From: Lepidodermella squamata
Lineage: Eukaryota > Animalia > Gastrotricha
DNA: 64,000 bases
Reading direction: 5' to 3'
NCBI GenBank assembly: GCA_047495785.1
Contig: JBLDXI010000015.1
Span: 1 to 64,000 of the forward strand
In this document: positions 24,257 through 38,190 of the stretch, piece by piece
Layout: each line of letters begins with the position of its first letter
Position numbering within the stretch: the first letter of the stretch is position 1
Program-made: the position numbers and the translations under genes
Notes under the pieces: generated by a model
Databases searched by the model: none
Told to the model about the DNA's origin: nothing
What the model saw: only the letters and a program-made list of their open reading frames with translations

Positions 24257-27200
24257 ATGTTATTACTATCGATATCGACGTCGTCGAGGAGGAGTAGGAC
24301 GACAAGGAGCAGCAGTCGATCCTCATCATCATCATTATCATCAGCCGATTTTTTAACTTCAAGCCGGTTATCATCGCCATCGCCATCTTCTTCTTACGTG
24401 ATTGCGATATTGATCGCATTCTACTGCTGCTGTTGTAGTCAACTCGTTGGAGCACAGCAGACCGTGTGGGACACGATTAATCGGAGCCCGGAACTGGCGC
24501 GCTTCAAGGCGCAGATCAACGCGATTCCGAGCCTGCGCGACCGCCTCGCCAACCCCATGTTCAAGTTCACGGTGTTCGCGTACACGGACGACGCGTACCA
24601 GGCGTCGCAGCGCGAACAGGCCGCAGAGCTGAGCCTGCCCGACACCATCAAGTACCACATCTTCGACTCGACCCTGTCGAACCTGGTGCAGCTTAGCGAG
24701 TTCGGCTCGCGCGACGTCCTCCGCACCATGCTCGACACGCCCGTCTTCACGAGCGCCGTCCGCGTCACCGACGACCTCGGCCGCCAGTCCCTGCGCTACT
24801 ACGTCAACCACGCTCAGGTGCGTTCACTTTCTTCTAGGTAGCAGTAATAGTCGATTTTTGTATTAAAAAAATCACCGAGCCTCAGCTAAATCATCTTTCA
24901 GCATTCAGCATCTTTAAGGCAGATTTCAAATCGTTGCGAGGAAACGCAACCTTTAAAATTAACCACAAATTGAGGAATTCTGAACCGGACTCTTTCTAAA
25001 ATCAACTATTTTTTAGAATTAACAAATTTCGAGCTTCCTTAAGTTGCAAATCGATGAATTTACTTGTTCCCCAGGGATAGCACAAACTTTCATTTCCTAT
25101 TAATTCCGCTAACGGTCTAAAATACCCTCATAAAATTGAGGGTCCAGTGCTAAATTTAAGCGCTCTATAGCACTATATTCTCCAATTATTCGCGAGTTTG
25201 GCGACTTGATTTTGGAATGAAATCGCTGACTGGTTCCTGGTACCCCCAGCTGTGTAGAAAATTTGTCAAAATTGGCTACCTGGAAGGTTGATATCGGAAA
25301 ATTACTGACTACAAAATCGATGCTTGTTGCAAAATCGGCTGTCTAAACCCGTAAAATCACCTATCATCAGGATATCTATCGGTTCGAAGCATAAATAAGG
25401 TTAACCTTGAAAAGTTATATTTTTGAGAAGCCTGAATTCACTCAAAAGGTGATTATTTTCCCGTTATCCCTTGAATGGACCCTGGCTTCATTTTTGAAGA
25501 CTAGAAAATATCCTCAAGCTCTGAAGTAGCTTGGAATCAGTAAAAAGTGAGCCTGGAATCTATCTAAAATTTCACCGTGACTTGGCCGATCTTCGCATTT
25601 TTGCGCTAGATAGAAAAATTCAACAATTTTGACTAGTACGCTTTTGTTGCAACGTTTGAATAAAGTTTTTAGCAGGATCTTACATATAGGTATTACTTGG
25701 ATGATTTATATTATCATAGATTTTGTGAAACCTGAATCTATTTGCAATGCTGTTTGTTATTTACCTGTGTGTAGGTGTTGGATCGCGACTACGCGCAGAC
25801 GTTTACAACGGCGTCGGGCGTCGTGTACCTGATCGACCGGGTGCTGGTACCCGTGGGCCGCGCGCAGTCCATCTACGGCTACCTGCAGCTGAGCGAGAAC
25901 CGCGTCACCAAGTTCAACGAGCTCATCGACCGCGTCGTGCAGACCGACCCGCAGTTCCAGACGACGCTGCAGACGTTCGCCAAGGGCACGGCGCTGGTGC
26001 CCAACGACCAGGCCTTCGCCAAGGTGCCGGCGCAGAACCTGGAGCGCGTGAAAACCGACGTGAACCAACTGAAGAACATCGTGCGGGCGCACTTCAACTT
26101 CAAGTCGGTCTACTTCACCGGGCCGATGCAGGTGGGCGAGGTGTACCCGATGGAGTTCAGCACGGCCGAGATCTCGAAGGACGACGACGGCAACGGCGGC
26201 GGCAGCGGCGCCGTGTTCATCACGTGCAACAACGTGCGCACGAAGCTGGCGACGAAGAACGTGCCGATGATGAACGGCGTGATCCACATCATCGAGGACG
26301 TGCTCTTCCCGTACGAGGACCTGCCGACGAAGCTGCGCGCCCAGCCCGACCTGCAGCAGTTCGCCGGCTTCGTCAACGAGGACCCGCAGCTGATGCAGGC
26401 GCTGACGTACGTCGGCACCGACGTCGCGGCGACGAAATACACGGTGCTGGCGCCGAACGACGCCGCCGTGTCCGAGTCGACGCGCATCCAGGGCCCGAAC
26501 CGCCTCAACTCGGCGGACAAGCGCGCGATGGAGCTGCTGCTGAAGGCGCACATCCTGCGCGACGAACTGCGCCTCGGCGACCTGCGCCGCGAACTCGCGC
26601 AGTACACCACGTCGACGAACCCCAACGACGTGCCGCGCTTCGCCCGCCGCATCACCCTCGCCGGCACCGAGCTCCGCTTCTACCGCATCGGAAATGGTAA
26701 TATAACATTATTTGATTGGCTTAACCCATAGGGCGCGGGTCCAGTAAATAAGTTCACAACGTGTCCCATAAAAATAATGTTTTTTACCAGGTAAATTTCA
26801 AATTCATTTGAGAAATAGATGAATTTATCAGCGCTATATTTATGGGAAACGCTGTACCTATATTAATGAATGATATTATGACCGACCAACTTGAGGGGGC
26901 CCATCTAAACAAAATGGGAGGGTTTTTTTTACCTTGGGAGGTCTCTTATGAAAAGCTCTTTTATGTTTGGCGATGGTTTCTTTTTGGCTGGCAATGGCTC
27001 ACCTACCTGATGATGGTTGATGTTGGCATTCATGTGCATTTGTGCAATAAAACAGAGACTTTCGTGAGTGGCGGCTTCACGATGGCGCGCATCACGCCGC
27101 AGCTGAGCAACATCGGCGCGACGAACGGCATCATCCAGCACATCGAGGCGTTCATCGGCAAGCCCGGCCGCTCCATCATCGACACGTTCTTCATGTTCAA

Positions 27201-28879
27201 CGGCCTGCTCAAGTACGCTTTCTGCTGTTTGGCTTGTTTTGTTTTTCGTTGTTGTTAACCTTCTTCTTCTCTTTTACATACCTATAACTACTAATCACTC
27301 GGTGGTGCACTTTTAATTAAAATACGGGGTCCCTGTAATATTAGGCATAACTTTGCGTACCTATAAAAATATCGATATGCCTACATGCGATTATCGATTA
27401 ATGTGTATTAGCGACGCTTTACGCGCAGTCACCCGCGATTGGCGGCTGCATTCCGAACTTGGCGCGCATCATCACGAATGACTGGCGAGTCGGCTCGGTG
27501 GGCGCGTCCAACGGCCTCATCCACTACATCGATGAGTTCCTGTGCCGGCCTGGCCGCACCCTCTATGACAAGTTGCAAATGCTGCCCTTGCTCAAGTATT
27601 ATAAGTCAACAATAATGAATAGCCAGCGCAAAAGATAGCTCGCGATACCGCTTGCCCACATTCCATTCATAAGAAAACCCGCTGCTAGCCGTAATTTTAT
27701 TGTTGATTTTATAGGTAATTATCGACAGCAATCAAGACAGCTTGCATGCGCTTGCACTATTTCAAACTAATTTCCAGCTTTGCATCACATCAGGTTCAAG
27801 ATCCGAACTCAAAAATAATCGAAAAATGTATAGGTTTTTAAAGGATGAAGAACTGATGTGATGCAATGCTTGTCATCTGTTTTCGCTTTCATTCTGATGA
27901 AAACAGTGTCTTATCGAAAGTGTTTAATTTTGCTTTTCATTTGTATAGCACGACGTTTTACTGGATGCGGCAGTACGGCTTCGACAGCCTGATCCGGGGC
28001 CAGCAGCCAGGCGGTGGCTACGTCACCGGTTCTGGCGGGCAGAACATGGCGCCGGGCCAGCCGGGCCAGTTCAACTACACGATATTCGCGCCGAACGAGT
28101 CGGCGTGGACGGCGCTGCTGCTGAAGAACCGCGCGCACGAGTTCCTGAACAGCGGCGACGCCATGTCGCGCATGTGGCGCCGCCACATCGCCCGCACCCA
28201 GGGCTCCATGTACTTCCTGCCCGACCCCTCCGCCATGTTCATCGTGTCCGGCGCTGGCTCGTCGGCGAGCGGCGCCGCGTACCAACAACCGTCAGGTACC
28301 AGCTACACGTCGCAGCAACAGTACGCCTACGGTTCCAACACCAACAACAACCAGCAACAGCAGAATAACTACCAACAGGGTGGCTACAACAATAACAACA
28401 ACAACAACAATAACTATGGAGGCAGTTCTTATGGTAACAACAATAGCGGTTCGTCGTACAACAGTGGCTACAACAACCAGAACAACCAGAACAATAACTA
28501 CAACCAGCAGCAAGGTGGGGTTGTTTCAGACCGGAACAACCAGCAGCAGCCATCGGGCAGCCCGTACGCGTCGCAGCCGTCGACGTCGGGCGCCGCCGCC
28601 ATGAACGTGCAGTCCGAGTTCACGGTGTACACGCTGAATTATCGGGAGACGCTGCGGGTGCGGCGCGTCGGCGACAACTTCGAGGTGCTGTACGGCGACC
28701 AGGTGTACAAGGTGCTGTACCCGAACATCGGCTGCGCCGACGGCATCGTGCACATCATCGACCGGCCCATCCTCATCCGCGACGACCCGATGAGCGAGGT
28801 GGTGCTCGGCGCCTCCAGCTCGCTCGCCTCCCTCGCCCTCGTCACGCTCGCCTCCATCCTAGCCGTTCTAGTTCGTTGA
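24257..28879 (+). CDS. Fasciclin-I-like cell adhesion protein: signal peptide, 4 FAS1 domains, GPI signal; exons 24257-24817, 25775-26696, [27056-27212 OR 27412-27595], 27949-28879
   Basis: FAS1 H1 motifs (FTVFAYTD, TALVPND, YTVLAPND, YTIFAPNE) and H2 motifs (ASGVVYLIDRVL, MNGVIHIIEDVL, ATNGIIQHIEAFI, ADGIVHIIDRPI) are present. GT-AG junctions are phase-consistent. The N-terminal segment is hydrophobic and the C-terminal tail is GASSSLASLALVTLASILAVLVR. Confidence 0.92.
27412..27595 (+). CDS. Alternative (mutually exclusive) exon 3b of the fasciclin gene
   Basis: TATTAG|CG...CTCAA|GTATT bounds an open frame ATLYAQSPAIGGCIPNLARIITNDWRVGSVGASNGLIHYIDEFLCRPGRTLYDKLQMLPLL. It is homologous to exon 3a and has the same phases (1 to 2). 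Confidence 0.85.
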
Positions 28880-30582
28880 AGAACCATTCAGAAGTACCTA
28901 TAGTTAGTTTTTAGGATGAGCCTAGCAGAGGCTCGCCGGACCGGAAAGACCATCAGCAATTGCAGCAGGTGTTCTCTTTGCCGCCTATTACTGGTCATCA
29001 GAATCTCATCGTGTCTCATATTATCTGCATGCGTGTTCTTTCCGGCCCGGTTCATCATTCGCCCGTTAAAAAACGAGATTACGTCCCACACTAATAGATA
29101 TTTGATAATTTTATAGATGATGACTATAATATTATATGAGGCGATGTTGTTGTTGTGTTTTTTCGCATTGCCATACCTGATCGATGATGATTGTGAGCGC
29201 GTTCGCGCCATCTGCAAACAAACCGTGGTTGTGAATTTTTATACAGACAAAAAACAAACTTACCGCATTAATACTACTTGTTACACTACGATGATGGACT
29301 TGCGCGCATACTTATGCTCTTATGCTTTTTCATTTGCAAAATGACGACGACTGTTCTGAAAAAATCCAATTATGATACCATTGCCTATTATACTGCGATT
29401 GTTGACGCAGATAACCGTATTTACAAGAAGTTGACAAACTTGATTAAAAAAACAATAATTATGCCATTTGAAACTTTTCATTCCTTTCATCTTGTTTCTG
29501 TCGTTGTTGATCACCTGATGATTGCAACGTTCAATATTGTTACAAGGTTCGAACTTTTCGTTCGATAAAACGTAAGGTAATACCTTTACTAATGTCGTCC
29601 AAATTAATTGAAACGCGTCTTCGCAGCTCAAAAAATGATGCGCTCCTTTTTTCACCTTTATCATATAAGCTACCGCGAACAACATTTTTGTGTGTGGAAG
29701 CAAAACCGATTGCTGCGCTTCTTGGTTCAAGCCGATGCCGAATCTGATTGTTTGTTTTGTCCACTGAAAATGAATGAATTTGTAAATAGCAGTAGGCCCT
29801 GCGCCCTGCCAACGTTCCAACCTAGTGAATGTGAAGCGCAGGCGCGGCCATGCAAGCAAGATCATGCGAATAACAATAAGTAGTTGATGAATATTTCTAT
29901 AGGTACCACCTAGCTGTGTTGATGCGCTGAGTTGCTGTACAATTTGTATACCAAGTATGTTGTATACTTACTTATACGTGTATGATACCTTCAACAACGT
30001 ACGTCATTGGTTGTTACTGTTGTGTACTACTGTTATCATGATATAGTATACGCTACAACATGATATACTTATATATTTGAATACTTATTTGATGAATATA
30101 TATTACGAAAAATATGAATACTATTTCGAACTTTGTGTACAACTGCGATTACAAACGGAAATAAAGAAAACACCGTTGAGGATGAACAATAAGATGCGTT
30201 TGTTTGTATTTTCACTTTCACCCATCATTGTGCAGCGAATCTGCAATGAATCGGCTAGTGGACAGACTGCCAAGCGGCAACTGACATTTTACAGCTTCGA
30301 AATTGAGGCATACCGATGGGAACCAGAGAACAGAATACAACTTTTGTTTTGTTTTATTCACTCATTCTGTTGCAGGTACCACCCAAAGTGGACTTGGAAG
30401 CGCGGTAACTGAAGAATAGTTTGCATGTTGGCGTAATAAAATAGAGAGAGAGAAAGAGACGGATAGATATCGAGAGCGAGCAAGAAGCGGCGATACTCGC
30501 ACTCTTTGAGCACATACACTTCATTCACTGTGGGCTAATTTGTTGAACAATTTGGCAAGGTACAAAGTAAGTCTGTATCTGA

Positions 30583-32635
30583 CTAGAACCACGCATTGTA
30601 GCCACCGTTTTCATACTGCGCCTGCTGCTGCTGCTGTTGCTGTTGCTGATGATAAGGATGAGGATTGTAGTAAGACGGCTGTTGTGGCTGCTGGTGATGG
30701 TAGTCATAATGATGATGGTGTTGCTGTTGCTGCTCTGATGGGTACTGAGGGTAGTGGGCGTAGGGCTGCGGCTGGTGGTGGTAGTGGTGGTAGTGGTGGT
30801 GCGACGGCCGTTGAGCCGGGTGCACGTGGTGGTAGTACTGCAAGTGCGCAGCAGCAACAGCAGGTGCATGGGCGGCCGGCGACGGCCGAGGTCGAGGCTG
30901 AACAGCAGCAGAAGCAGAAGCAGGCAGCAGAGGCTGAGCAAACGGCTCAAACAACGGCGCCGGTTCCGCCTGTTCGTAGACCGGTTGCTGTTGCTGGGCA
31001 GGATGGGGGTAGGCCTGGTGGTGGAGGTGAGGGTGGGTGTGCAGCGCCGCCGCCTGCCCGCGATAATAATCGATCAGCTGCGACTCGCTCAGCCGTTGCC
31101 GCTGCTGCGCTGCTGCGGATGGCTTCACTATGGGCCTGCCTTTCGCTCGCTTCGCCACCGGCTTGCCGTCGTCGTCGCACTGGTAAAGCTCCGACGGGAT
31201 GAAGCAGGCTGGGTTCGGCGTCGGCGCCTCCGCCCACGCGCCGCCCGTCTCGCCCACCGCGTTCCACTCCGCCCGTTCCGCCGCCGTCCATTCGTGCTCG
31301 CGCCTGTAGTCATCCAGCCCATCTCCTCCACCCCCGGTCCCACCAGCCGCCGATTTCTTCTTGTTCTTCTGCTGGTCCTTCTGCAGCAGAAATGACGGCG
31401 TCAGAGACACGACGCGCGGCAACAACTTCTTCTTCGTCGTCTTCTTCTTAACCGCTTTCACCTTCTTCGCAGACTCTAGCTCGACTTTCCCTGCTTCATC
31501 TTTACCACTACTCTCACCGACTACGATCACGTCCTCGTCATCATCTTCATCCGGCGGGTTCCACAGTGCTTCGACGCAGCCCGGCACGAGTTCCGGTGGC
31601 GCTTCCATTTTCACTGACGCTGCACACACATTCAAATGAGCAGTCAATCCCTCTGATTCACAAAATGTGCGACAACTAACCGTCGAAACGAGGCAGTTCA
31701 GTCGCTACTATTTGAAAGCCCTGGTCGCGGTCTGGACACGGCGGTAAATGCTCACCTGTTGAAATAACGCCAACTATCACTTTAAAACCAGACAGTCACG
31801 CTCTACCACTTACGAGGCGCTGGTATCGGCCGAAACCGCGTCCGATTCTTCACCAGTTCTGAAAGAGGACTGCAAAACAGCGAATTATTTCGGCATAAAA
31901 CATGTCAACTTACAGTCGAGTAGGTTCGTACTTGGGCGGTGCAGGCCGCGCGTACGGATGAAACCGGTAGTCTTTAACGCCCGTCGTTTTGTCTAGCGCA
32001 GTTGCTAAAGACGACGAAGCTTCTTGCAGCTGTTGTTGCTGTTGCTGTTGTGAAAGCAATGATTCTTCACCACCAGACTCCATATCTGACGAGAAATATT
32101 CGCTTGAACCTGTTACGTGGTCAACCATAGCCGTCACCACGGCAACAATGTCGACAGCTATAGCTAAACTTTGATGCGTCTCCAAGCATTCTGCGTTGTA
32201 TGACGTAGGGCTGGCGCTGCACATTTCTTTATTATTTTCACTCATCGCAGATTCAGCTATTCCGCTATCGCATACTCCGCTCCTCGCTCTTTTATCAACT
32301 TGATCGCCTTCGCCGCCACTACCATCGTCATCACTTATTTCGATGACGACTGCCGACTCTTCGGAAGAAGCTGTCGACGGAAGTTTGCAGGCGTTATTGT
32401 TAACGGGCGGCGCCACGACGCCTTCATTTTTTTCATCGTCACTGCTTATGAGGCAAGATTCATCCGGATCTTCGCCGTTATTAATCACAGCATATTTCGA
32501 TGCGTCACATGGCTCTCTCAGCAAATCATCCTCTACTGCATCTTCTGCCACTTCCTTTTTCACCTCGACATTTGCTTTATCATTAGTTTTCTCATCAGTT
32601 TCGAGTATAGCAACATCAGCAGCATCCGTGGTCAT
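30583..32635 (-). CDS. Uncharacterised low-complexity protein (acidic N-terminus, Q/H/Y/P-rich C-terminus); exons 32635-31914, 31869-31814, 31755-31681, 31619-30583
   Basis: Three short GT-AG introns join the 252-aa and 354-aa ORFs in frame through two small exons (PLSELVKNRTRFRPIPAP; REHLPPCPDRDQGFQIVATELPRFD). No family recognised. Confidence 0.75.
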
Positions 32636-33756: not shown

Positions 33757-34537
33757 ATGCCGCGTGATGATGGTAACAAGGTGGCGACTAAGGAGACGGA
33801 TAAGCGTGGTAGGTTGGCCGGGTTCACTATAGCCCGTGCCACGCCTTTATTCGTAAATAGCAATGCTAATGCGTTCAAGTTGTTTTTATCAACATGAACT
33901 GAATGCCTGTTAGAAGATCACACTTCTTCAACGAAACAATCGGTTTCTACTGTGGTAGCTAGAGCACCGGTACCACCACCAATACCGCCGCCGCCGCCGC
34001 CGCCTGTGCCTCCTGTGCCTCGCAGCGAAGATTCATCAAAGACGAATGCAAAGAACACGTCACCGGGTCTCTCAATTTCTCTTGGACTGAAAAGAACCTC
34101 TCCGGCTCTCACGTCAACTCAGCCTTCTAAAGCGCCCAAGCTTGCGATTGTATTGCCTTCAGCAAAAGATTCCGCCGTCACAGCAAAAAAATCTGATAAG
34201 ATCACAGCCCCTCTACCGCAGACAAAAATCAGCAGCAATGTAGCTCGAGTGTTCGGCGATGACGACGACGACAGCAACGAAGAGGTTTGTTGAAAAATGC
34301 ATATTTGCGCTCGTTATGTAATAATAATTTTTATATCGCAAACTGTAGGAGATTCCGGCTGAATATCGCATTCGAATGCGCAATAAAGGTCGCGAAAACC
34401 CGACGGCCTGTGGGCCCAATTCTTTCGGCAAAATGGGCGGCATGGGTTTCTGTGATTATCGGTCGATGCAAGAGCGTGAGCTCGAAGCAATGGCTCGGCA
34501 GTTGGCGGAGGATACCGAAAAGCCGAATAGCTCGTAG
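33757..34537 (+). CDS. PCNP: PEST proteolytic signal-containing nuclear protein; exons ~33757-33808, 33914-34284, 34349-34537
   Basis: The spliced C-terminus VARVFGDDDDDSNEEEIPAEYRIRMRNKGRENPTACGPNSFGKMGGMGFCD matches the PCNP motif (E.P.E..MRMKNIGRDTPTSAGPNSF.K...GF.D). Confidence 0.88.
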
Positions 34538-35382: not shown

Positions 35383-38190
35383 TCACAGACGAACACAGTC
35401 GGGCGATCGGCAGTCGCATAGCATGTTGTCGCCGTTGTGGTGCCGAGACGCTACGACCTGCAGGGTAGGCAGCAGAGGCTGCGAGATGGTGTGAGACACG
35501 CGAGGCCGGTTCAACGAAGCGGCGCCATTCGACATAACCTGAACCTGAGCAGGGTGATGTTGCTGCGGACGACCCAGCGAGCGAGCATTAGCGCCGCCGC
35601 CGCTGTTGTAGACTCGCTGCGAGGCACGAACGCGTTCGACGAGTTCCTTCTGCGGGATGCCGATGCGGCCGGCGCAGCGAAGCGCGTCGATCCGCAGGGC
35701 GTCGACTGCGGTGGCGATTGCGTCGGCGTCGCAGCGCAGCAGTTCGGCGAGGGCGATGACCCACTCGGGCGTGACGTGGCCGAAGCCGAACTTGTCCGAG
35801 TACGGCATATCGCCCAGTTCGATCTGCGCGCGTTGCAGGTAGTCACGAAGGCGAGTCGAAGCATCAACGCTGTTGTTGTTGTTCGAATTGTTCGACGGTG
35901 GCATGCAGTCGCCCGAGTCGGAGCCGTATGACACACCGGAATCAGTCGACGAGTTGGCACCGCCGTTGTTGTTGTTGCGGCGAGTCGAGTTTGAGACAGG
36001 GGTCGAGCCGCCGGCCAGCGTCACAACGTCTGCGAACACATCAGCGAGGCGAGTCTGTTCGACGGTGGTGGTGGCGATTTTGCGGGCGATGCGCCTCGCC
36101 AACGACGGCTGGTTCAACGCGACCTGCGCCAACTGTTCGACGCTGTTGATGTTCGCCAGCTGAACGAGGCGGTTCGCGATAAGCGCAGCGTTCGGCACGT
36201 CGTAAGCGCGTAATAGGCTCACCAAATCACACGGTGATGTCTATAGAATGGAAATCGATTAAAAATCAATCAATAATGAATAGCGCGAGTACGTTACCTG
36301 AGACGAGTCTGATGACGAATTGCTGCTGTTGTTGCTGTTGTTGTTCGGGCGGCGTTTGGCGGCTGCGTGGGCAGCGAGGGCGCACGACGACCAGTCGCGC
36401 ATGATGAGCGCCGGTTGCGACGGCGATGCGCCATTGCCGGCGTACAGCAGCGCGAGGGCATCGGCGGTCGTCGGTTGTTGTTGCTGCTGCTGCTGGCGGA
36501 CCATGTGGAGGTCGCGAAACGCGGCGGTGGACTTCGACTTGTAGAAGGATCGCACCTGCGAGCCGGGTTCCTGCACGCGGTACGGCGAGGCGGGGATGAC
36601 GTGCGACTCGGGCGACAGCGGCGCGGCGCCGAGGCGATGCTGTTCGTACAACTCAGGGATCGTGTCCATGCGGCAGTTGGCCACAGAAACGGCTTGTCGC
36701 TGCAGTGATGCTTTCTTCACCGGTTGTTGCTGTTCGACGACTGGCTTTGTCGCTGGTTTCGTCGTCAATAACTGTTGTTGTTTGTTGTGTTTTGGCGCGT
36801 GCAGGGCGGCGACAATGCGTTTCGACCATGAGACCAATCGCGACGATTTCGACGCCTTTGACGGCTTGCTCGCTTTCACGTCTTGGTCGCAGCCTTCGAT
36901 GTGGAGATGGCTGGTCATCGGCGGTTTCTTCAAGTCAATGCTGTACATGATGGAAAAAAGTTGTCATTAATAATGATGAGAAATAATATAATTTTTCGCG
37001 TAAAATAAAGAGCAACGCAAGCAGCCGCAACAACAAGAAAAATGATGTTGTGGATAATAATAATAATAATGATGAAGTGCGTTACATTATTGTCACTCGC
37101 CTGCATCTTCAACAGCGACAACGGCGACGCGCGGCCACAAAAAGGCCCACCACTCGCGCGGTTGCTTGTAACAAAAACATGCTGTTCGCGTCGTGTTTTT
37201 CAAACAGCGCCTCTACTACATGCGACGTGCGCGCAAGTCATGAGTGCGCGCTTTTTGCGAATGCGCTATATAGTCACATATATAGTAGCAGTAGTAGTAA
37301 TCAAGATGTTTTTATAAACAAACAAACACGTGTAATTGATGCGCGCGCGGGAAAGGTGACGCTTCTTCACAGGGTGCGAAATTGACACTTCTGCTGCTGC
37401 TATTATCAGTAATAAAAGTTGCTAACCTGGATTGGGCGAGGCGTGAACTGGCGGCGAAACGAGACGCCGACTGGCCGCGAGGCATCGTTTTCGTCGTGTT
37501 GCCGTCATCGGAGTCGTCCTCGTCACCGGCCGAGTAGTCAGAAGCGATAGCTGCTGCCGGCTGTTTCGCGGCCTTGTACGGCGACGCGTCGTAGTCGTGC
37601 ATCAGCAGCGTGTCTTCGCCCAGCGTCAACGTAGTGTCGAGGCGGTGATGCTGGTTGGCTGATCGCGATGATTGAACCGGTGTTTTGCGAGTCGAAGGCG
37701 ACGAAGCGGCGACAGGCTATTTTCATAGATATCAAATAAAACTCGTCATCGGTTTTCGATTGGTTTTTACCTTGCGGAAATTGAGGCGTTGCGAAGTGGC
37801 ACGAGCCGGCGATCGGCTCGACGAGGCGAAAGATGAGGCGAGCGAAGACGACGCGAACGAAGTCGAATTGACGTCTTCGATATCGGCAGCGCACTGTTGC
37901 TGCTGCAGTTGTTGATGGTGATGATGCGAGGTCAGCAGCAGGTGCAAGCGCACTGATGATGATGATGCTGAGGCGTGGTTGCGGATGCCACCGGTAGTAG
38001 ATGGCGTAGTAACTGATGCAGTAGTAGTAGCAGTAGTGGTAGTATATGCGGCGGCGTCATTAACCATCAGCGGCGAATCTTCAGGCGACGTCGGGGCGGC
38101 TGTGAGCATAGCAGCTCGGCTGCGGCTGCGCGACGCGGCCGCTGCCGATCCGAGACCACAGCACGACGTCAACGAAGCGCGTACAGGCAT
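35383..38190 (-). CDS. Uncharacterised ~736-aa protein with a helical C-terminal region; exons 38190-37771, 37716-37427, 36940-36298, 36240-35383
   Basis: Four ORFs are joined by phase-consistent GT-AG introns (2211 nt in total, divisible by 3), with GC-rich coding-style codons. Confidence 0.7.

Follow-up and report, generated by a model that had tools for sequence, protein, structure and literature searches.

The 64,000-nucleotide (nt) stretch of DNA analysed here, referred to as the window, is the beginning of contig JBLDXI010000015.1 of the gastrotrich Lepidodermella squamata (GenBank assembly GCA_047495785.1). On its forward strand, at positions 24257-28879, it carries a gene for a protein with four tandem FAS1 domains. 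The gene has five exon positions, which we number 1, 2, 3a, 3b and 4 (Table 1). Exons 3a and 3b follow one another inside the gene and encode the same segment of the protein, the end of the third FAS1 domain and the start of the fourth. We consider it likely that they constitute a real and ancient pair of mutually exclusive exons, enforced by the reading frame, in a surface protein with four FAS1 domains.

The relationship between the two exons is apparent at several levels. Their peptides are homologous (BLASTP E 2e-10, with 36% identity and 73% positives over 33 amino acids), a DNA alignment of the exons shows blocks of identity around an NG.IH.I..F...PGR core, and tblastn returns reciprocal matches between them, while no third copy of exon 3 was found by tblastn within the window. 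Both exons have AG/GT splice sites and the same phases at entry and exit, and both are open throughout in the corresponding frame (51 codons in 3a and 60 in 3b). Since each length is of the form 3n+1, exon 4 stays in frame when either of them is used by itself. When both are included, 3b is read in the frame left by 3a and a stop follows after 22 codons; when both are skipped, exon 4 is read in the frame left by exon 2 and a stop follows after 13 codons. A full-length protein needs exactly one of the two, because both or neither leads to an early stop. Adjacent, internal, homologous, similar in length, identical in phase and preserving the frame, exons 3a and 3b have the structural properties by which mutually exclusive exons arising from tandem exon duplication are predicted (Pillmann et al. 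2011, PMC3228551). Much of this had been anticipated in a preliminary description of the locus. The exon boundaries given there proved exact when the sequence was read at all junctions, and the tandem duplication, the loss of frame with both exons or neither, and the nine additional codons and two cysteines of 3b were likewise borne out. In the mechanism that we propose, 3a and 3b would be an ancient tandem duplicate with mutually exclusive splicing, so that each protein-yielding mRNA would carry one exon and give a product of 856 amino acids with 3a or 865 amino acids with 3b. Transcripts with both exons or with neither would presumably be cleared by nonsense-mediated decay.

Table 1. Exons of the FAS1 gene and the intron between its alternative exons. 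Positions are those of the window; a slash marks an exon-intron border, with intron letters before an acceptor in lower case.
Feature	Position	Strand	Boundaries, length and phase	Content
Exon 1	24257..24817	+	ATG at 24257; donor CAG/GTGCGT, phase 0	S/R-rich start, hydrophobic signal-like stretch, FAS1 domain 1 (Pfam Fasciclin 21.8 bits)
Exon 2	25775..26696	+	922 nt; ends ...GGAAATG/GTAATA; 1 nt left over (phase 1)	Remainder of FAS1 domain 1, domain 2, bulk of domain 3
Exon 3a	27056..27212	+	157 nt; aaaacag/AGACTT...CTCAA/GTACGC; enters phase 1, leaves phase 2	a-type; final four strands of FAS1 domain 3, H2 variant NGIIQHIEAFI, linker, first helix of domain 4
Intron 3a-3b	27213..27411	+	199 nt	GC 0.35
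Exon 3b	27412..27595	+	184 nt; tgtattag/CGACGC...CTCAA/GTATTA; enters phase 1, leaves phase 2	b-type; same segment as 3a; canonical H2 NGLIHYIDEFL; 7-aa and 3-aa insertions in loops ahead of H2; two Cys
Exon 4	27949..28879	+	acceptor ttgtatag/CACGAC	Remaining FAS1 domain 4, split by an N/Q-rich low-complexity insert; hydrophobic C-terminal tail of the kind seen in glycosylphosphatidylinositol (GPI) signals; stop codon

Sequence searches of the window gene were run exon by exon. The Pfam Fasciclin family (PF02469) was matched by exon 2 in two stretches (97 bits, 9.5e-28) and by exon 4 (28.8 bits, 1.5e-06), and the match of exon 1 is borderline, just below the cut-off of 22 bits; exon 3 supplies the end of the third of the four domains. 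The sequence shows one hydrophobic stretch close to the N-terminus and another at the very C-terminal end, and the product is probably secreted and lipid-anchored. For the structural mapping we relied on a natural fusion in a related gene of another organism (relA, see below), whose product P0062 joins the counterparts of exons 2 and 3a. Its Pfam FAS1 domain covers residues 29-174 and its a-type segment residues 143-193. An alignment-based AlphaFold2 (AF2) model of P0062 had a predicted local distance difference test score (pLDDT) of 90.7 and was used in place of a single-sequence model that had reached 37.6 and was discarded. In this model, the a-type segment forms four beta-strands (142-147, 150-154, 161-163 and the H2 strand at 166-171), which are followed by a loop and by helices 182-188 and 190-193 that open the next domain. 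The best Foldseek matches of the model in the PDB are domains 3-4 of fly fasciclin I (1o70), TGFBIp and periostin, with a probability of 1.00 each, and identity to 1o70 in the structural alignment is 22%. Among solved structures, phmmer ranked periostin at 2.6e-06 and 1o70 more weakly (E 0.006).

The H2 motif of 3b (NG.IH.ID..L) aligns with the end of each periostin FAS1 domain, and the less canonical variant encoded by 3a falls in the same columns. Judged from the alignment and the P0062 model, the insertions of seven and three residues that distinguish b-type from a-type exons lie in the inter-strand loops before H2. Alignment, Pfam and the model agree that both exons encode the H2 motif of domain 3 and the first helix of domain 4, as the preliminary description had it. 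The swapped segment would comprise the last four beta-strands of domain 3 including H2, the linker between the domains and the helix that opens domain 4, and the b-type form would have the longer loops ahead of H2. The label of a fasciclin-I protein, which had also been given to the gene, holds for the four-FAS1 architecture and does not establish orthology with insect fasciclin I: of the solved structures, those of periostin, TGFBIp and fly Fas1 come nearest, all with low identity, and word and HMMER searches recovered no named orthologue.

A search of the genome (121 Mb in 151 contigs) for this family found three loci, the window gene (C15), C26 and C17. Outside the species, a relative was found in a eukaryote represented by four metagenome contigs of the European Nucleotide Archive (ENA), which are 97-99% alike and correspond to haplotypes; it has two tandem genes, relA and relB. 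Identity to the window gene in exon 2 is 76% for relA, 62% for relB and 55% for C26, and C17 is distant at about 32%. The closest parallel to the arrangement in the window is relB (L013 10001-13104). Its a-type exon (L013 11430-11583, 154 nt, 52% identical to 3a) precedes a b-type exon (L013 11740-11923) that has the 184 nt of 3b and matches it at 53% identity over all 60 amino acids without a gap. Both relB exons have AG/GT sites and phases 1 and 2, they stand in the same a-then-b order, and double inclusion and double skipping follow the same stop-codon logic as in the window gene. Two genes downstream are common to relB and the window gene; they lie on the reverse strand of the window at 34334-34459 and 35656-36180 and at L013 19864-21362, and one of them has a SASH1-type homeodomain-like Pfam match on L013. 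This shared gene order ties the position of the window gene to that of relB.

The remaining family members have one form each. C26 (C26:1453585-1455962) has a single exon 3, which is b-type, 184 nt long and of the same phases, with flanking introns of about 60 nt, and 3b matches it at 53% identity over all 60 amino acids, again without a gap. C17 has a single exon 3 of a-type length, and relA (L013 6746-9305) has an a-type segment, 80% identical to 3a, fused in frame to exon 2. When the seven exon-3 peptides were aligned, they fell into two clearly separate classes, a and b, which differ in sequence as well as by two indels. Because these classes separate across genes and species, the exon duplication predates the split of these genes and species. 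A tree of exon 2, for which two adjacent relA exon-2 pieces were concatenated, has the form (C17,(C26,(window, relA, relB))) with moderate support (node 85/92, five sequences). We hold loosely to a history in which the ancestor of the window gene, relA and relB had both exons and relA then lost the b-type exon, and equally loosely to the view that C26 either diverged before the exon was duplicated or has lost an a-type exon. No separate relB-like gene was present among the family loci of the genome.

The intron layout differs among these genes. Within L013 6746-13104, neither relA nor relB has an intron separating exons 1 and 2, and in relA the one before the a-type segment is missing too. Introns are about 50-190 nt long in relA and relB, compared with 199-957 nt in the window gene.

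Wider searches retrieved the same single relative or proteins of a generic kind. An exhaustive HMMER search with the 3b peptide gave 59 matches and no orthologue with a b-type exon; the matches are generic multi-FAS1 proteins, aligned over the H2 core of about 25 residues only and 23-27% identical to exon 2. A word search with 3b for short spliced fragments produced no candidates, and word searches with exon 2 and P0060 found only the one metagenomic relative and no named protein. Two scans of Joint Genome Institute (JGI) metagenome contigs, based on exon-2 and b-type alignments, gave pattern matches and no confirmed relative, and a look-up in the ESM Atlas returned generic fasciclin clusters only.

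Is exon 3b maintained as coding sequence? Synonymous divergence (dS) is undefined through saturation in every between-species exon pair, with third positions differing at 0.68-0.84, and no DNA-level similarity was detectable between the loci of the two species, in introns or in exons. The dN/dS test suggested in the preliminary description consequently gives no ratio, and we compared nonsynonymous divergence (dN) with that of constitutive exon 2 instead. Here 3b behaves like the constitutive exon: dN is 0.34-0.45 in 3b and, for the same pairs of genes, 0.32-0.38 in exon 2, and the b-type identity of 53% to both relB and C26 compares with exon-2 identities of 62% and 55%. The G+C content at third codon positions (GC3) of 3b is 0.83 in its own frame versus 0.56 and 0.44 in the other two, a three-base periodicity set among introns with a GC of 0.36; elsewhere in the gene GC3 reaches 0.96 in both 3a and exon 2 and stands at 0.86 in exon 4 and 0.76 in exon 1. 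Apart from one Gly-to-Cys change, 3b retains every residue that is invariant among b-type exons. It has an open frame and intact splice sites, and it is exactly as long as the b-type exons of relB and C26. In the relative, the four haplotypes show zero changes in both exon-3 copies, compared with 27 substitutions and 25 indel columns in the three flanking introns of L016 (Fisher p = 7e-8 for substitutions alone). From these sequence comparisons, 3b looks like a live coding exon, and a long-dead 3b is excluded. A DNA run that holds the window (X3) contains a second haplotype whose nine single-nucleotide polymorphisms (SNPs) and one insertion of 1 nt form a cluster in intron 1 (25180-25564), and no variants were reported from it in any exon, 3b included.

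The high GC3 of the window gene (0.76-0.96 across its exons) is not a property of the whole family, for it is 0.43-0.51 in C26 and 0.33-0.37 in the genes of the relative. Expression-linked codon bias and local biased gene conversion limited to exons are both possible sources of the split between exon and intron composition.

Direct evidence for splicing comes from one small RNA-like run (X1), kept as contigs. Its contigs concentrate on exons and cover 27949-29200, and loose ends link 24820 to the start of exon 2, joining exon 1 to exon 2. The run shows the junction 27212>27949 with GT..AG ends, which means that 3a is used and that 3b can be skipped. Other features of X1 are technical in appearance. 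Many contigs across 24397-27450 fold back on themselves, with 'opposite strands' joints about 80-180 nt apart, and this looks like a library or assembly artefact and not like biology. Loose ends also hint at a skip of about 98 nt within exon 4 (28037-28136), which has non-canonical ends with a short GCG microhomology and would shift the frame; template switching or faulty assembly is the probable source.

How the choice between the exons might be made was considered at the level of the introns. That each productive mRNA holds one exon is enforced by frame incompatibility. Steric exclusion through a short intron is unlikely, as the intron between the exons is 199 nt long in the window gene and 156 nt long in relB. 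The introns share only short, AT-rich inverted repeats, and docking/selector RNA pairing did not exceed chance, the intron-intron duplex energies lying within those of dinucleotide-shuffled controls (the fraction of shuffles with an energy no higher than that observed was 0.82, 0.135 and 0.12); nor was any intronic element found to be common to the window gene and relB. These results lend no support to a Dscam-like docking/selector system, and the absence of detectable docking/selector structure in the 3a/3b introns distinguishes the gene from Dscam-type clusters. Two proposals of the preliminary description found no support. Its minimal Dscam-like recognition code is an overstatement for a two-way switch with no RNA pairing above shuffled controls, and the isoform-specific disulfide envisaged for the two cysteines of 3b is unlikely to be a conserved feature because the pair is not conserved: neither cysteine is present in the b-type exon of relB, which has one cysteine at another position, or in that of C26, which has none. 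It is plausible that the a and b isoforms would differ in binding specificity, since the classes have not merged and there is, for each of them, a related gene in which it became the only form.

Mutually exclusive exon pairs created by tandem duplication are a well-known kind of event, and in general terms the surprise is modest. Further examples include Dscam, muscle myosin heavy chain and N-cadherin (PMC2655722). Like these, 3a and 3b are neighbouring, internal, homologous, similar in length and identical in phase, encode the same structural element and fit the frame one at a time. They depart from the known cases in offering only two alternatives and in their length difference of 27 nt, which is conserved as a class feature. 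According to McAllister et al. 1992, as cited in PMC7392893, insect fasciclin I isoforms arise from 9-nt micro-exons. The window gene resembles insect fasciclin I in that its product is an extracellular protein of four FAS1 domains whose C-terminal tail is hydrophobic and in that its probable alternative splicing would alter the protein, and the domain 3 model of the relative finds its best match in 1o70. The similarity in sequence is low (phmmer E 0.006), and the variable element is a 51- or 60-residue segment spanning a domain junction, in contrast to insertions of three residues from micro-exons.

Periostin and TGFBIp have an N-terminal cysteine-rich domain, and the splice variants of periostin alter its C-terminal tail and are not known to alter a FAS1 domain. 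The window gene shares the four tandem FAS1 domains of these proteins (PDB 5yjg, 5yjh and 5nv6), which are its best sequence matches among solved structures; unlike them, it lacks the N-terminal cysteine-rich domain, and its domain 4 contains an N/Q-rich insert. Within the literature searched, coverage of which was incomplete, mutually exclusive exons within a FAS1 domain were nowhere found to be described, and the matches concerned Fas2, the Fas1 micro-exons or unrelated genes. The preliminary description, by which an exon swap of the whole H2 strand is not known to have been described, is in agreement with this.

Several observations weigh against a functional pair of mutually exclusive exons in this species. 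In relA, which is more similar in sequence to the window gene than any other gene found (76% in exon 2), the b-type exon has been lost altogether, so that it is dispensable in at least one lineage. Conservation of the arrangement rests on two species and their paralogues, one outside lineage having been found. The GC3 of 3b is below that of 3a and exon 2. Finally, among the splice junctions that the preliminary description had named as a check, 27212>27949 was seen in X1 whereas those involving 3b (26696>27412 and 27595>27949) were not found among its contigs, which are very thin in coverage, and the only X1 contigs that reach 3b, at 27318-27450, pass through its acceptor without splicing and are about as deep as the intronic background elsewhere in the gene. 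The missing 3b junctions say little, because depth is also zero over the constitutive end of exon 2 (26262-26696). These points can be assembled into an alternative in which 3b is a recently silenced relic: only 3a would be spliced here, decay would be too slow to be seen yet, and the pair would still work in relB. Such a history accounts for the single observed junction from 3a to exon 4, and it would be tolerable for an organism in which C26 supplies a b-type protein from the same genome, just as relA manages without a b-type exon; the somewhat lower GC3 of 3b (0.83 versus 0.96 for 3a) also fits. It has to contend with an open frame, intact splice sites and a length of 184 nt that equals those of relB and C26, with strong three-base GC periodicity amid introns of 36% GC, and with the retention of the invariant b-type residues but for one Gly-to-Cys change, while X1 is too thin for an absence to be read from it. 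We regard silencing as improbable, and we infer that 3b is spliced in this species.

Two further explanations grant 3b a place in the transcripts without a distinct role for its protein. If 3b acted as a 'poison' exon, its inclusion together with 3a would bring in a premature stop and lower the output of the gene without making an isoform. The stop that joint inclusion creates 22 codons into 3b and the lack of any 3b-only junction are in keeping with this idea. A poison exon needs no conservation of its protein, yet the b-type exon keeps 53% identity, a canonical H2 and an exact length despite saturated dS, and it is the sole, constitutive exon 3 of C26; we find this explanation hardly credible. 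Alternatively, both exons might be used with a noisy or unregulated choice between two functionally equivalent proteins, in line with the finding of no regulatory RNA pairing above chance. This strikes us as highly unlikely, given that the a and b classes have long been distinct in sequence and indels in two genes and that each form has been fixed alone elsewhere (a-only in relA, b-only in C26), as would be expected if the forms act differently. A real, ancient and mutually exclusive pair thus seems to us the best explanation of 3a and 3b.

It is possible to go a step further, though we do so tentatively and would not call the idea probable. The exchange of a-type and b-type segments could be an ancient two-state switch that remodels one face of domain 3, through the hairpin loops before H2, together with the hinge to domain 4, and thereby yields two adhesion or ligand specificities; the two states would have been hard-wired repeatedly, as a-only relA and b-only C26. 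A trade-off between alternative exons and gene duplicates is a general idea in the alternative-splicing literature. The present family resembles such a trade-off in that a gene with both exons occurs alongside the b-only C26 in the same genome and the a-only relA in the relative, and the order of events is weakly resolved (node 85/92, five sequences). If true, the two-state switch would be a clean natural example of the interchange between splicing and gene duplication in a family of adhesion proteins.

FAS1 proteins such as fasciclin I, periostin, TGFBIp and the stabilins mediate adhesion, and their recognition of partners is poorly understood. A conserved natural exchange of the H2 strands together with the hinge between domains 3 and 4 would mark that surface as functionally tunable. 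Exons 3a and 3b offer two ready-made variants for binding studies and structural comparison, and the related genes with a single form allow a small-scale look at how alternative exons and duplicated genes take one another's place.

Low-complexity sequence is found both within the gene and beside it. The insert that splits FAS1 domain 4 is long and rich in N, Q, G, S and Y (28330-28560, in exon 4), and it is not conserved, the alignments with relA, relB and C26 breaking into two blocks around it; a repeat at 28379-28421 in the same exon was left out of the read mapping. The reverse strand immediately downstream of this gene has a long open frame (30583-31647) for a Q/H/P-rich sequence with poly-Q and poly-H runs.

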